From: Guillardia theta CCMP2712
Lineage: Eukaryota > Protista > Cryptophyta
Direction: 5' to 3'
DNA: 64,000 nucleotides
Assembly: GCF_000315625.1 (NCBI RefSeq)
Contig: NW_005434639.1
Span: 127,670-191,669, forward strand
Every line of letters begins with the position of its first letter. Position 1 is the stretch's first letter. The notes below the pieces were generated by a model that saw only the letters and a program-made list of their open reading frames with translations, made no database searches and had not been told where the DNA came from. Below are positions 42,540-49,476 of this stretch, piece by piece. The translations under genes were made by a program, and so were the position numbers.

Positions 42540-43906
42540 ATGCTGCGGCTTGTACGAGGGACCGGTCTTCGCTTCTTCGGGCGGCACCCGAAGCATGACG
42601 TCGGGCAGCTCAACAGCTCCAAGCAGCTGCCCAGGTAGGAGCAACGGCGAGGGAACATGGCGGGCTCGATGCATGTCGAGGGCCATGTCGAACAGAGAGG
42701 ATGGGTAGAGATGGAAAAGGCGGTTGAGGGATAGAACAGAGCAAGAGGGGATTCTTGTGGTGTGGATGCAGCCTCGGGTGTGATGTAGGACACATCACTT
42801 CTAGCCCTGTCTTGTGTCTTGCTGTTGAGCCTCTTGCGCGTGCGCCCTTTGTTGAGTTGTGTGGTGGGGCTGGGTGGGTCGGAGTCAAGTGTTGGACCTG
42901 AAGATTTCCTTGATGGCAGAGTCGATGAGATCACTGGATCCATATCAAAGTCGATAAAGAGGAAAGAATGGAAACGCCAGCCCTTCCCCCACTCGAAATT
43001 TGACAGTGAGCTTGCACTGCTGTTTGCTGACCCTACTCATTTGATCCGTTTGGCAGGCAAGGAGGAGATTCGGCAGAAGAGAGATATCTACCTCTATCAG
43101 AGATCTCTGCCAGCCCCCGTCATAGATGCTGTAATGAATATGAGAATGGTCGGGCAGAATGTCGACTCAAGCTGTATTGCAGTATTTGCACGGAGCAGAT
43201 GTTACGGTGTCAAGGGAAAACACATTCAGGCGATGGTGGATTATGGACGCGCGGGATTATGTGATGATGTGGGCACAAGATGCCGGCCGTGAGATAACTC
43301 TGTTGTTCTACAGACTTTGGGAAAACTTGCTTCCTTAGCTTGTCGACTTATCATGGGCAAACACAAGCCGATCTTTGACAGGTCTCACATGCTGCGTCGT
43401 AGTGCTTGCTAAAACAAGAGTATCTACTTGCAGATCACTTGTTCTTGGGGACTTTGTCATTGTTACGAATGCGCCTGAGATCAATGTCGCCAGAAAGTCA
43501 CAGGATACAAAACTTTACCGATATCACACTGGTTGGTTGATGGCTTGCGAAGACTTTCTGAGTTTGACGTGTCGAGCAGGGTACCCCGGTGGCCTCGTCG
43601 AAACCCCATACATGAAGATGCTGAAAGAGAAACCTGAAGAAGTCATCCGAAGGTCCTTCTGCTCTAGACGTGCCGCGCTGCTTGTCACGTTGCTGCAGAG
43701 CTATTTCTGGGATGCTTCCGAAGAACAACTTGAGGAAAGAAAGGATGAAACTGCTGAGGGTTTTCCGTACCAGCGAGCACCCACACCTTGCGGAAGAACC
43801 GACGATAGTCCGAGCAGACTTGTTCGAGGTACTCGATCAACTTCCATCCTGTTCTCTCCCTTGCCTCGATTGCATCCTCTCTCTCTCGCGTCAGATCTTC
43901 TCATAG
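42540..43906 (+). CDS. MRPL13: Organellar (probably mitochondrial) ribosomal protein uL13, multi-exon, with N-terminal extension
   Basis: Spliced: RWWIMDARDY|TLGKLASLACRLIMGKHKPIFD|RSLVLGDFVIVTNA...KLYRYHT|GYPGGLVE...KPEEVIR|RAISGMLPKNNLRKERMKLLRVF...EHPH, the bacterial-type L13 signature. The N-terminus MLRLVRGTGLRFFGRHPK looks like a mitochondrial presequence. The last exon is tentative. Confidence 0.9.
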
Positions 43907-44480
43907 TGGTGCTGATTTGGCCTTCAGACACGTTCTCCCTGGTTGGAACCGAAAGAGGCAGTACAGGTCGCAGAGTTTTGTCAGATTGATGATCTGATCC
44001 TCACTTGTATGTATAGCAAGTGGACAATGAAGGAGTCGTTATCCTTGACCATGAAGGAAATCCCATCCAGGACCTGGTTGATAATCATGGTGAGCTCAAC
44101 GTGGTTGGTAGAGTGAGCGCGGGACTGATAGTTTGTATGCAGGCAACACATGGACTGAGGAGGAGGCCGAGTGGCTGCTGAGCGAAGGGACGACGATGTT
44201 CCGCGATCCTGTGACTTTCTTGCTCGCTGGTTCCTGCTAACGCGGCTGACATGTTGGCGCAGGAAATTTATGGCAAGGACGTTCCAGAGCCGAGAACGGA
44301 CACATATGGTGACTATTGGAAGAAGAAGATGAAGTGAGAAGGAGCTGGAGTAAATTGAGCTCCCCTCTTTACCCTCCTCCCCTTCTATCTCTGTTTCCGT
44401 CTCCCACTCCACTCCTCCAGTAGACATAGGGAGCACATATTCATCTTCATTGATGGGTAAGTCGCTAAGTAGTGTACAGT

Positions 44481-47400
44481 CTAACGGAAGACGGAGTTGA
44501 GGTAGTAATGGATGGAATAGGCGCGCTTGATGCTGTACAGCCGATGCATCTGAGTGTGGAGAGAGTAGAGCTGGCTGTCTTGTATCTGAATCTCCCCGAT
44601 GATCTGGAGATTCCCCTCCCCTCGGTAGATCAGATGCAGCTTCAAGTCCCGGTATCCATCTTCCACCTCTGCCCAGGCAAACTTGTTCTTCACCCGGCAG
44701 AGCGTGAGGGGCCCGGAGGAGGAGGACGCCTCGAACCATTCCGCCACCTGGACCATGTGGCTCGGCCCCTGGCACACGAGGCACAGGCGGACGGGGTCGA
44801 GGATGTTACAGCAGAGGGGCCACGTGCCCTTGGGGTTAGGAGGAGCGTACTCCCTCAGTTTCTCCCTCATCCTGCTGACGGACTTGACCCGGGCAAGATG
44901 CACCTTGACGTTCCCCGGGCCCTCCCGGAAGATGCAGCGCAGCTCGTGGACGACCGTCTCCTCCACCGGGCGGGTCTCCCGCGAGGAGGAGGAGGTTAGC
45001 GCATCCAGCCCGGTGCAGTGGCTGAGGAGAACGTCCATAACGGCCCTGTGGAAGCCGTCGTTGAGGATGCGAGACCGTGTGTTGAGCTGAACGACGAAGA
45101 TCTCTTCGTCCAGACACTCCAACGCCCCTTCCTTCACCATCTGCTCCCAATCCGTCCTCGCGTCCGACTTCTCCCGCTCCCCGTAGCGGACTGCCCCCAC
45201 CTGGTAGCAGGGTCAGCAAGGGACATCACCTCTGCTGGGAGAGCATCTAGCAGGGAGCAAGGAGGGGACGAGCATCGGGAAAGGACGAGGGCGAGGCTGG
45301 GGGAACAACAACTGCAAATGTGCTCACCGTGTCCTGTCTCTCCATGCTCAGCGTCACGTGGCGATTCTGCTCCATGAAGGTCGACGAGTAATCTTGCCAG
45401 GACCTCCTGCTAAGAGACAATCGATGAGGAAGGCAAGCGGCAAGCGGGACTCAGTCACCTTCCCTCCACATCCGATTGCACTCCAGGGATGTGAGGAGCG
45501 TAGACGACGAGGACAGCGCCGTGCTCCTTGTTGACCATTTCATTGAACCTCTGCTCGCACGACTTGACAAGGTCGGCCATGAGCTGCTGGGCAAGGAGTT
45601 GGAGCCTTCGGAAGAGGGTGATGTCATCCTTCCAGAGCTTGATGTTGGTGACCTTGGTCTTGAAGAAGAGATACCTTTCCTCCTTGGACAAGTTCCTGAT
45701 CTTCTCGAGCCTCATCTGCAGCAGCTTGTTCCTTTGCTCTCCTGTCATGAACCAGCCCAACACGCGCTGCATGCACGAGGAGAGGAGCGAGTCCCAGTGC
45801 GGCACGGTGGAACCAACCTGCTCCAGACGCCTCTCCAGGTCTTGAGTGTGGTTGGAGTGGAGGAGGAGAATCCTGCATTGCTCCAGAAGCCAGTCGCACA
45901 GGTTGTGGTACTGCTCCGAGTCTCCAACGTCAGCCTCGCTCCCTCTCTGCAATAGACACATGCAGAAGCTGTCGAAGAAGTGCTCGTCGAAGTCGTCTTG
46001 GAAGATCGACAGCCGCGCGGCCGCCTCCATCGACCTCTTAGCGATCACCTTCAACTGGCTCCTTGCCATCCGCATCCCCAACCGCTCCGTGCTGAGCGCA
46101 TAGCCGTCCTTGAGCTGGATGTGAAGGCGCTTCCGCAGGTCGGAGATCATCTCGATCAAGTCCTTGTCTTCCTGCACCTGCAGCCGACCCTGGAACTTGC
46201 GGAAGTACATGAGGAGGAGGACGGCGAGGAGGATGAAGGGAATGAGCACGACAACGATGAAGATACTGATGTGCTCGCATTCGTTTCCCATCAGCACAAA
46301 GTTGGAGGGGCAGGTGTCGCACCCATGGGAGCTGCTCGCGCCATACATGGACGTGATTTTCTTGTTCGGACATTGAATAGCTTGCGTGGAGTTCTCGGGG
46401 CAGAAGAAGCCCACCGGGCAGATCGTAGCGTTTGCTGTTCCTCCTGGACAAAACCAGCCAGCAGGGCATGAGAGGCAGGACAGGAGCGTTGAATCCCCGT
46501 AGAAGCCTTCGGGGCATATTGAGGGGATCCAAGGGAACCATGTCTGCTCGTTGCCCTTGAGCCAGTTGCAAGCCACCTGGAACATCGCCTCCCTGGAGGG
46601 CATGCCGCTTGTCTTCAAAACATTGCTCTGCGCCATGAACTCCTGAACGTCCTGGTCGAAGAAGTCGAGTTTCGACGCCAAGAAACTGACATGCTTGTCG
46701 ACGCTCGGGAGATACCTCCACATGTAGTTCCTCGGGTTCATATCCACCAGGCCTGTCGCGTACTTCCCTTGCGCCTGCTCGTAGCCGTTGGGGTCCGGCA
46801 TCCTGACCCTCACCGGCACGTTGTCAGTCGCCAGCAGGTTGTCGTCCGGCTTGAACCACCCGAACACAAAGTTTCCACCCCTCACTACGTCATAGTAAAC
46901 CTGGTCGAACGCGCTGGATCCATCCCGAAACTTGACAAGAGCGACGGGGAAGTCAAGGAAGAAGCTCAACTGCAGCATCACGTGGTATTCATACTGCACC
47001 ATCACCGGCACACACTGAGACGTGTTGCTCCTCCTCCTGCACGCAGGGGAGAACCACACCATGTCCCTGTAGCAGTCCAGCTGGTTATTGCCCGTGAACT
47101 TGATGTAGTCCGCCTTGTACCGCAAGTTCCCGTACGTTCCTTGATCCAAGTTCGTGCAGGTTTCGATGTTGCCGATGGGGGTTAGAGCCAGAAGCTTGTC
47201 CAAGCTATCGAAGTACTGCTCGGGGTTGTAAGACCCTGCGTTGTAATACCCGTAGAAATCGAGGAAAACCTTGTCCTTCTTGCCCCGTTCAACCGTGGAC
47301 TGCCACACAAACACCTGATCGACTGTCTTGTAGTCATACACGTTGGCTAGCAGCGGGCGGTACGCGTACGGCAACCCTTGAAGAGTTGCGATGCCCATCG

Positions 47401-47938
47401 TCCAAGTCTCCACTGACAGGTGGATCGTCGGATTCGCGTTGTTGATCTTCACACATTTCTCAATATCCACACAGCCGGCAAGATACGCCATGGAGACTCC
47501 CGTGTTGATCGCAACCCCTGAAAGCGACACCACGGAGTAACCCATCACCTCTTCTAGAAGAATATAAATGATCTCAGCAACGATGCGAGCGGAGGACCAA
47601 GACGCGTACGGGAGGGAGACGTTGTGAGCAGAGCCATCGGGATACGCCAGAAACCTCTTCTTGACGTCTGACAAGCGCAAGCCGGCAAACCTGATGTCAT
47701 CGTACTGGCCGTTGAAACAGCTGTTGGGGTGGTCCACCAGGGTTATCGCTGGCGTGCATGCGACGAGAGAACATTGCGCGATGAATATCAAAGCAATGAA
47801 AATGTGAACCAATCGATCTTGTCCAGCAAACCTCGCTAACCCACGAGCCTGTCCAGCAAACTTCGCAACCCAAAGCATTCCTTGCTCAGATGCTATGAAG
47901 TCTTGTTGAGAACCCCCCCCAAACATACGCGCTTGCAT
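44481..47938 (-). CDS. Single-pass receptor: betaine/choline-type periplasmic-binding domain + Cys-rich (GCC2_GCC3-like) stalk + TM + helical region + C-terminal RelA/SpoT-like domain; 3 exons, about 1093 aa
   Basis: Exons 47938-45459, 45409-45328 and 45200-44481, joined by GT-AG introns of 49 and 127 nt that keep the frame. Hydrophobic leader LVHIFIALIFIAQCSLVA. PBP2-like motifs ASWSSARIVAEIIYILLEEVMGY, ETW, GWFKPD, VACNWLKGNEQTWFPWIP. Cys repeats CPEGFY...CLSCPAGWFCPGG...CPVGFFCP. TM IFIVVVLIPFILLAVLLLMYF followed by RK. C-terminal ARVKSVSRMREK...ILDPVR...DGYRDLKL...GEIQI...MHRLY. Confidence 0.85.
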
Positions 47939-48762
47939 ACTTATTTACGGTGTAAAGATGCTTGAGGCCTATGGTGTTGAAGCATGTCCTTTTGATATGA
48001 CGGAATATCAAGAGGAATACATTCACATCCTGCAAGTACAAGCGTATGTCGTTGCTCGGTGGTTCTAACAATCCTGCCGTCCGTGCTCTTGAAATCTGGA
48101 GCACCCACGAGTCACATTAACCTATCCCCCTCTCCTTGCTGTGATCTACCAGATATCCTCCTTCATCCTCCTACTTCCGTCAATCGATCGAGCTCCACCC
48201 CTGCTGCTCCTCGCTCCTGTGCTAGGTATACCGCCGTATCGCCCTCCCCGACATTCGGGGGAATATCGCTGAGTGAAAAATGGGCCCTTTTATATGTTTA
48301 TTGACTTTTATACTTGCTATGGAATTAAAATACTTATAAAGCTCATGTTCACTTCTTTTGACTTATATAATATACTTATATATATTATAAACACTTAATT
48401 CATATATAAAATGTATGAAAATTTTAGATCATCAAAATCTCTGTACCAGGAGCTCATCGGAATCTGTACTATGATACTGGTAATATATGGTAATAACGAA
48501 AAAAGAAAATATTTCCCATACCCACGCATTTTCCTGATTTATTTACCACTTTCGACACGGTGGGATATCTTTTTTTACTCGAAATTATACATCAATCAAA
48601 ATTGAGTAAACATTGCTGCATTAACCGTTCACCGATATATATATGCGTGCCGCCACTCTCCCTGCCAGCAGTATGCTGAACCGTTTTCCTCTGCCCCCTC
48701 CACCCCTCCACCCCTCCCCCCTCTCCTGTTCCTGTTCCTGCTCCTCTCCCTTCGTTAGCATG

Positions 48763-48821
48763 CTCCTCCTGCTCCTCCTGCTCCTCCTGCTCCTCCTGCT
48801 CCTCCTGCTCCTCCTGCTCCT
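48763..48821. repeat. (CTCCTCCTG)n tandem repeat, about 6.5 copies
   Basis: Direct reading of the sequence. Confidence 0.9.
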
Positions 48822-49476
48822 ATGCTTCGTCCTTCTCGAGCCCTGCTTCTTCGCTCCAACGCCATGCTTCATCCTTATCTCCCAACTCCTCCTGATCTCA
48901 GTGCTTCAAGCCGATTCTTACCATCGCCCATCATCAACTATCGTTTCTCATCTTCTTCTCTTCAACTCTGTTCTTCCGCATATTTCATTCCCAACGCGTC
49001 GATCGGCTCCCCATGCCATTTCCACATCTACGTACTCTTGTCCTTCTGGAAAGCACACCGATACATTCTAAACTTATACTCATCTTTCTTGGCCTCAAAT
49101 TTCCACCTTTGCTGCCTGCTCTTGTGCTCCCAGACTCTAGTCTTTCAGCTGTACGCCAGCTTCCATATCCTCGTTCCCTCTCGCTGCGCCATGTCAGACT
49201 CTTCTTTCATCTATTCGTTCTGTGGCATTGGTGCGATGAAATATTCCTCTGCTATCCTCTCTTCTTCAAGAAATTCTTTCACTCCAAGTTGTTCTTGTTG
49301 TACCAAAACTTCCTTCTCATCGTCATCCAACAGTAGTTCTGTGTTGACTTTTGATGCAATGTTTCGAAATCGCTTTGCTGAAATACCAGTTCCAGGTTGA
49401 CGAGATGGAATACCTAAAGAAATGAGCTCAAGGGTTTGAAAACAAACAGAACTTCATAAGCTTGCGCGTTGGGGAG

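Follow-up and report, generated by a model that had tools for sequence, protein, structure and literature searches.

A candidate single-pass receptor with a RelV-like alarmone synthetase domain in the cryptophyte Guillardia theta

Gene structure and predicted product

The stretch of DNA analysed in this study (the window) comprises 64,000 nucleotides of the cryptophyte Guillardia theta CCMP2712 (contig NW_005434639.1, positions 127,670 to 191,669), and the subject is one gene on its minus strand that encodes a predicted membrane receptor ending in a RelA/SpoT-type domain. Two open reading frames (ORFs) lie there, one of 827 amino acids (aa) at 45455-47938 and one of 239 aa at 44481-45200, both on the minus strand and 254 bases apart, and they belong to one gene with one spliced mRNA. 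The preliminary description of this DNA, made from the sequence alone, had joined the ORFs through an 82-nt exon and two canonical introns and had proposed an RNA check across 45459/45409 and 45328/45200; exactly these joints, which remove 49 nt and 127 nt, were found in transcript contigs from three runs of three studies. The contig joints read CT..AC on the plus strand and hence GT..AG on the strand of the gene. The last base of exon 1 is 45459 (AG/GTgact), intron 1 ends in ...ttAG, intron 2 reads GTgagc...ccAG, and the frame is kept, giving a spliced coding sequence of 3282 nt that translates into 1093 aa with a single stop at its end. The idea that the ORFs are separate genes, or that their join is an annotation artefact, is refuted and has practically no probability left, with both joints in one contig, three independent transcript assemblies and canonical GT..AG introns filling the gap between the ORFs.

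A 3637-nt transcript contig is colinear with the genome from 44429 to beyond 48200 without further joints, and poly(A) (seen as poly-T loose ends) was found in raw RNA reads at about 44431-44434. In-frame stops occur just upstream of the ATG at 47938 within the same unspliced exon, and the true start of the protein may be M1, M5 or M21. The domain order given by the preliminary description was confirmed by hydropathy and sequence: a leader, a sensor domain, a Cys-rich stalk, one transmembrane (TM) helix, a helical module and the C-terminal domain. The 1093-aa product is a predicted type I single-pass membrane receptor of presumed location, and 514 aa follow the TM helix as its cytosolic part. 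The features of the gene, all on the minus strand, are as follows.

47939..48200, minus strand: 5' untranslated region; transcript contig extends about 41 nt past 48200; in-frame stops upstream of the ATG
45459..47938, minus strand: coding part of exon 1, aa 1-826 and the first two bases of codon 827
47756..47812, minus strand: hydrophobic leader or signal peptide by hydropathy, aa 43-61
46499..47752, minus strand: ectodomain, aa 63-480, probably a diverged OpuAC/ProX-type domain with large insertions
46271..46498, minus strand: Cys-rich stalk, aa 481-556, 9 Cys, weak Ephrin_rec_like match
46202..46270, minus strand: predicted single TM helix, aa 557-579, then RKFQGR (positive-inside)
45461..46201, minus strand: cytosolic helical module, aa 580-826, running on through exon 2; family-specific, from blastp conservation
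45410..45458, minus strand: intron 1, 49 nt, GT..AG, from transcript contigs
45328..45409, minus strand: exon 2, 82 nt, the last base of codon 827 and 27 codons
45201..45327, minus strand: intron 2, 127 nt, GT..AG, from transcript contigs
44481..45200, minus strand: coding part of exon 3, aa 855-1093 and the TAG stop
45024..45122, minus strand: long conserved helix preceding the catalytic core, aa 881-913, with a predicted local distance difference test (pLDDT) above 90
44523..44951, minus strand: RelV-like synthetase core of predicted RelA/SpoT fold, aa 938-1080, from fold model, profiles and conservation
44431..44480, minus strand: 3' untranslated region, poly(A) addition at about 44431-44434 in raw RNA reads

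Fold, relatives and catalytic residues of the C-terminal domain

Searches of the last 239 aa against Pfam (E up to 1), NCBIfam and PDB sequences returned nothing meaningful. The AlphaFold2 model of aa 855-1093, built on the family alignment, reached a pLDDT of 82 and a predicted template modelling score of 0.77, and its top 50 Foldseek matches were all RelA/SpoT homologue (RSH) synthetases. B. subtilis SAS1 matched with E 7e-6 and 23-25% identity, and the list also includes RelP, RelSeq, an exported Streptomyces small alarmone synthetase (SAS), FaRel2 and CapRel. In a structure comparison the first 24 entries were again all RSH synthetases, with SAS1 and RelP above CapRel and Tas1; generic nucleotidyltransferases (RsfS, TdT, pol lambda) scored 8.4 or below. 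The modelling shows that the C-terminal domain has a predicted RelA/SpoT synthetase fold, so the outcome of the proposed fold check on the last 240 aa agrees with the preliminary description, although the PF04607 match that it expected there was not obtained.

The RSH comparison set consisted of E. coli RelA and SpoT, 80 RelA loci and short PF04607 ORFs of Vibrio-related genomes. Some of the latter are called RelV-like here on the basis of their size (257-300 aa), their host genus and their being a third PF04607 gene beside RelA and SpoT; V. cholerae VC1224 lay outside the comparison. When the family was compared with RelA alone by hhalign the signal was weak (P 0.0016), and it arose only with RelV-type sequences added. 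The profile of 111 family members matched the RelV-like ORFs with a probability of 97.8 and P 1.3e-12 over 122 columns that cover all motifs, and it matched the mixed RSH alignment with P 2.5e-9, compared with 0.7 for the reversed-profile control. Two other SAS groups (unnamed subfamilies) and the long RSH gave P 0.005-0.02, and the RelV-like group itself matched other bacterial RSH groups (P 2e-6 to 1e-4) more weakly than it matched the algal family. The likeness to small alarmone synthetases, which had been noticed by eye, thus reflects real homology rather than chance, but the nearest known enzyme is Vibrio RelV and not RelQ, which had served as the reference.

The HMMER family profile scored RelV-like ORFs at 24-45 bits, and among 151 evenly sampled Pseudomonadota genomes it found only the two from Vibrio (per-genome E 4e-10 and 1.5e-9). 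The RelV-like ORFs are themselves borderline for PF04607 (24-36 bits, cut-off 27). Corresponding motifs in the Vibrio-type ORFs and the algal family are VKNRF/VKNKF, SGYRDLN/DGYRDLK and EVQLHL/EIQIHD, and the D-x-x-R spacing is equal. A maximum likelihood tree, in which the SAS sample (as in hhalign) was gammaproteobacterial only, taken from Vibrio relatives, and in which the tree tool flagged long branches, placed the eukaryotic family and the RelV-like ORFs in a joint clade (SH-aLRT 99) with eukaryote monophyly also at 99. The algal family stands beside the seven Vibrio-type ORFs as their sister group and does not fall within them, with branches of 2.1-2.4 substitutions per site. Among the sequences sampled, profile comparison and tree show the C-terminal domain as a probable sister of the Vibrio RelV-type SAS. 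RelV is an experimentally established (p)ppGpp synthetase that has been described as unique to Vibrio (PMC7744563), and it is one of 12 SAS subgroups (PMC3153485).

Motif scans for the family in 185,579 prokaryotic species genomes and in IMG/VR viral contigs found no member, using patterns too specific for RelV-like proteins. A tblastn match on a Pseudonocardia plasmid (E 6e-3) was spurious, with 6 bits against the family profile, no motifs and no Pfam match, and a weak match of the family profile to an HCN-channel C-linker among PDB sequences (E 0.006, 73 columns) was taken as chance. A separate observation concerns XopAD/skwp type III effectors: aa 74-225 of the 239-aa ORF gave a weak full-domain NCBIfam match to the C-terminal end of that profile (E 0.061, profile positions 1949-2093 of 2133), and PRK09169 was also matched (E 0.16). 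Large bacterial effectors of the XopAD/skwp type may end in a RelV-like domain.

The 111 members share only about 40% identity with the domain of the window (first alignment), and the positions that align with Mg/ATP-binding and catalytic residues are shown by the family alignment to be under strong conservation. The aligned roles are the catalytic/metal-binding Asp, the catalytic Glu, phosphate-binding Lys/Arg, the G-loop Tyr and the Glu-x-Gln motif. In the hhalign register the residues of the receptor and of E. coli RelA correspond as K960=K254, R964=S258, K968=K262, D989=D275, Y1037=Y319, E1057=E335 and Q1059=Q337, and R992 has no counterpart. D989 is encoded at 44796-44798, Y1037 at 44652-44654 and E1057 at 44592-44594 (minus strand). 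Dasgupta et al. are said to have found in 2014 that K107, D129, R132, L150 and E188 are essential in V. cholerae RelV; these fall on K960, D989, R992, F1010 and E1057 in the same register. Conservation among family members is as follows.

K960: 110/111
R964: 109/111
K968: 111/111
D989: 111/111
R992: 111/111
N1026: 109/109
Y1037: 78/90, with a further 5 Phe
E1057: 86/86
Q1059: 86/86

The ectodomain and the receptor family

The ectodomain (aa 63-480) contains 9 Cys and two N-x-S/T sites (N106 and N305). It is probably an OpuAC/ProX-type substrate-binding domain, judging from its sequence. When Atlas language-model features were used, the score was 0.91 and 99 of the 100 nearest clusters were OpuAC, the first of which also carries Ephrin_rec_like. 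When the ectodomain was compared by hhalign with 23 bacterial OpuAC proteins, two colinear segments were found, an N-terminal beta-alpha unit (P 1.3e-4; reversed control 0.4) and the C-terminal helices just before the stalk (P 8.9e-6). Only these two ends match, and the middle, about 225 aa, is unalignable to OpuAC. Two Trp of the ectodomain, W114 and W179, match conserved Trp positions in the bacterial OpuAC proteins; their role in a binding cage is putative.

The betaine/choline-type ectodomain of the preliminary description is consistently but modestly supported by these two segments, by the language-model neighbours and by a Pfam match to OpuAC (PF04069), but that match is sub-threshold (E 0.014; 15.4 bits where 21.2 are required; confined to aa 107-159) and no usable fold was obtained, the AlphaFold2 model from a 5-sequence alignment having a pLDDT of 34. 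The failure of this model is due to the small number of homologues, only four to seven of which exist. The ectodomain paralogues have no Pfam match, the ectodomain profile found no match among PDB sequences, and a last database search with it added only three more unannotated relatives. A quaternary amine as the ligand, suggested by analogy with the OpuAC family, is possible but rather doubtful.

A Rosetta-stone argument was considered and rejected. In one Vibrio genome about 300 nt separate a RelV-like gene from an OpuAC gene (contig 1, 301853-303748); the same two kinds of domain are joined in the algal receptor. This adjacency occurs in 2 of about 25 Vibrio-related genomes, the second at contig 2, 314641-315951; because it is so rare and may be coincidence, nothing was drawn from it.

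Relatives of the C-terminal domain are numerous. A word-indexed search found 44, an exhaustive profile search found 2021 clusters at E up to 1e-3, and the G. theta genome alone contains at least 38 stretches that match the family. The named members are from Guillardia, Hanusia and Cryptomonas (the colourless C. paramecium among them), and the language-model neighbours of the domain point to diatoms and ciliates. Relatives with the same receptor plan, which the preliminary description had proposed to look for, were found with other sensors before the same cytosolic cassette: CHASE in GUITHDRAFT_162182, ANF_receptor in GUITHDRAFT_122367 and GUITHDRAFT_110646 (all G. theta), ANF_receptor followed by an Ephrin_rec_like stalk in relative P0105, and a Phosphonate-bd substrate-binding protein (SBP) domain in the MMETSP protein P0053. 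Each of these has one TM helix 280-570 aa ahead of the synthetase domain. The stalk of the receptor appears to be of an ephrin-receptor-like/TNFR-like kind, since Ephrin_rec_like is significant in P0105 and the source names of the paralogues agree.

The helical module (aa 580-870) is conserved across sensor classes, with blastp matches to P0055, the CHASE member (E 1e-15), and to P0053 (6e-13), and its aa 580-826 had no match in PDB or Atlas. Because the module is conserved in this way, the whole cytosolic part looks like a reusable output cassette, as expected of a receptor family.

Some further observations were made on the family. Upstream of the strong synthetase domain, P0105, P0070 and P0176 carry a second, much weaker synthetase-like copy (30-38 bits), which suggests a tandem arrangement, possibly of pseudo-enzyme plus enzyme. 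The family profile also gave weaker matches (E 1e-9 to 1e-3) in genome G000, inside open frames of about 1000-1100 aa, at C64:421481-421960, C103:57094-57528, C50:417703-418140, C49:530585-533101, C226:4643-4969 and C13:133274-140248. A 4.6-kb transcript contig (depth 458, compared with 134, in one run) matches the gene only at 44581-44605 and 44680-44699, the stretches that encode the GYRD and GEIQ motifs, and represents an expressed paralogue, a different gene.

Next to the receptor gene, the downstream neighbour on the opposite strand contains, at 43375-43989 (plus strand), an exon that encodes a bacterial-type ribosomal protein L13 (PF00572, E 4.9e-10), and a highly covered transcript contig from that side reaches 44365. 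Low-complexity ORFs lie on both strands at 48621-49071, just upstream of the 5' end of the receptor gene, with (RRS)n repeats encoded on the minus strand and poly-Leu on the plus strand; this is probably a non-coding simple repeat.

Proposed mechanism, alternatives and known systems

The model proposed here is that of a ligand-regulated RelV-type pyrophosphokinase receptor that releases an alarmone in the cytosol, and taken as a whole it is slightly favoured. The OpuAC/ProX-type ectodomain, facing the outside or a secretory lumen, would bind a small solute; glycine betaine, choline, dimethylsulfoniopropionate (DMSP) or another quaternary amine is a guess made from the family. Ligand occupancy would be signalled via the TM helix and the helical module to the synthetase domain. 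In the cytosol this domain would move the beta,gamma-pyrophosphate of ATP onto the 3'-OH of a purine nucleotide, most likely GDP/GTP as for RelV, so that the product would be (p)ppGpp. The protein would thus be comparable to a receptor guanylyl cyclase whose messenger is an alarmone. We infer the product, the ligand and the cell-surface location by such analogies, and an active enzyme is favoured because of the conservation pattern and the relation to RelV.

Several results weigh against this model, in addition to the sub-threshold Pfam score and failed fold model of the ectodomain, its paralogues without a Pfam match and the sampling and long branches of the tree. PF04607 misses the receptor domain and finds only the two canonical RSH loci in the G. 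theta genome, and the family profile matched no solved RSH among PDB sequences. The canonical His of GYxSxH is variable in the family (K/M/Q/S), the canonical Arg of EhQIRT is His or Gln, and most members have Pro in place of the first Arg of RxK. Because several acceptor-side positions deviate from canonical RSH, the acceptor could differ from GDP/GTP. The only two HD_4 (alarmone hydrolase) domains of G. theta are both within the two canonical long RSH genes and no stand-alone Mesh1-like HD_4 hydrolase was found in the genome, so no obvious, dedicated cytosolic turn-off enzyme is evident.

The deviating acceptor-side residues and the missing stand-alone hydrolase also bear on a different output for the same receptor. 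The same RelA/SpoT fold makes ppApp or modifies tRNA in toxic SAS, and the domain might make (p)ppApp like Tas1/FaRel or pyrophosphorylate the tRNA 3'-CCA like CapRel/FaRel2, in which case the output would be growth arrest, defence or self-destruction rather than a reversible messenger. A large, fast-diversifying family, with its 38 or more stretches in one genome and 2021 clusters, is typical of conflict and recognition systems. However, the specific relative is RelV, a housekeeping-type (p)ppGpp synthetase, with the two other unnamed SAS groups at only P 0.005-0.02; SAS1 and RelP score structurally above CapRel and Tas1, and the sensors of the family (amino-acid/ANF, CHASE and SBP) are those of nutrient and hormone receptors. 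This output is considered unlikely, with perhaps a modest chance.

The domain might instead be a pseudoenzyme, a nucleotide-binding or structural module that signals via protein-protein contacts. It does not reach the Pfam threshold, not all canonical residues are kept, and the weaker second copies in P0105, P0070 and P0176 may be degenerate. Against this, the metal-binding Asp, the catalytic Glu, the ExQ Gln, the G-loop Tyr and four basic residues (two Lys and two Arg) are nearly invariant among 111 members, and the five residues said to be essential in RelV align with the receptor positions given above; a pseudoenzyme is considered improbable. A similarly low probability is given to a sensor that faces the lumen of the endoplasmic reticulum (ER) or of the outermost plastid (chloroplast-ER) membrane and reports a lumenal metabolite. 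Cryptophyte plastids sit inside the ER lumen, and a leader peptide alone leaves the final membrane undecided, but the Cys-rich ephrin-receptor-like/TNFR-like stalk, the N-glycosylation sequons and the ANF, CHASE and SBP sensors of the paralogues are typical of cell-surface receptors. Such a placement would change only the origin of the signal and not the way in which the protein works.

If the ligand-regulated pyrophosphokinase model is extended to the family, cryptophytes, and by language-model neighbours also diatoms and ciliates, may have a large family of cell-surface receptors with diverse ectodomains, each making (p)ppGpp or a related alarmone-type nucleotide in the cytosol. As a corollary, Vibrio RelV and the algal family would share a specific common origin, and since RelV is confined to Vibrio, this would point to transfer between a marine eukaryote and vibrios in either direction. 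This extended proposal is tentative and falls a little short of an even chance. If true, it would describe an unrecognised class of receptor enzymes alongside receptor kinases and cyclases, as well as a second-messenger pathway that operates outside organelles. Sensors for betaine/choline/DMSP-type solutes on an abundant algal lineage would be of interest to marine ecology in themselves.

To our knowledge, plastid RSH enzymes are the only known source of (p)ppGpp signalling in eukaryotes. No eukaryotic RelA/SpoT enzyme of a receptor type or bound to a membrane came up in full-text literature searches. An RSH survey lists stand-alone eukaryotic synthetases only as a few unplaced sequences from Dictyostelium and Ascomycota (PMC3153485), and animal cells have been reported to contain ppGpp although no synthetase is known there (PMC7666150). 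The receptor is a concrete candidate for non-organellar alarmone synthesis in eukaryotes. Its putative parts (SBP sensor, single-pass receptor and SAS) are of known kinds, and the combination and the cytosolic eukaryotic setting are new. This study adds RNA proof for the gene, a family-wide conservation table, the conserved cytosolic cassette and the specific link to RelV; because that link supplies a characterised reference enzyme for the family, the hypothesis is directly testable by standard assays.

Comparison with known systems places the protein between several of them. The ProX/OpuAC binding proteins of betaine/choline ABC transporters (PF04069) resemble the ectodomain in an N-terminal Trp-Ser/Thr with L-x-E-x-GY-x-V and in colinearly aligning C-terminal helices with W-x-x-x-N-x-x-x-W-x-x-W. 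However, they measure 260-340 aa and belong to a transporter, whereas the ectodomain has about 420 aa with an unalignable middle, is tethered to a membrane receptor and has only putative cage residues. RelV (V. cholerae VC1224 type), the closest sequence relative found for the output domain, shares VK(S/T)xxR..EK, (T/L)DxxR, VKN(R/K)F, GYRDL and E(V/I)Q(L/I)H with it, but is a soluble bacterial protein of about 258 aa without sensor or TM helix, whereas the algal domain would serve as output at the C-terminal end of a 1093-aa receptor. No profile-sequence match was detectable to the RelQ/SAS1 and RelP/SAS2 chains of Firmicutes (PDB 5ded, 6ewz and 6fgx). Those enzymes are soluble homotetramers; for the algal 239-aa domain a homodimer prediction scored 0.00, which is evidence neither way. 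The toxic SAS (CapRel, FaRel2 and Tas1), whose likeness is known from structure comparison alone, gave lower structural matches than SAS1 and RelP, and the criterion of an adjacent antitoxin-like or immunity-like partner is inapplicable to a eukaryotic gene.

Plastid RSH (Rsh1-4) of plants and algae are, like the algal receptor, eukaryotic proteins with a RelA/SpoT synthetase fold, and G. theta has two canonical long RSH genes. These canonical RSH pass PF04607 and carry HD_4, whereas the receptor family fails PF04607 and is without HD_4. Plant and algal RSHs are organellar and soluble according to the literature, unlike the receptor family, in which the synthetase domain is predicted to be cytosolic behind a TM helix. 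In layout the closest parallel is to receptor guanylyl cyclases of the ANF-receptor type, which likewise have an ectodomain, one TM helix, a helical juxtamembrane or linker module and a C-terminal nucleotide-converting domain, and whose ANF_receptor domain is itself present in algal paralogues. The algal receptor differs in its output, a predicted RelA/SpoT-type pyrophosphokinase fold in place of a class III cyclase, and in its linker module, which has no known relatives, and it has no kinase-homology domain.

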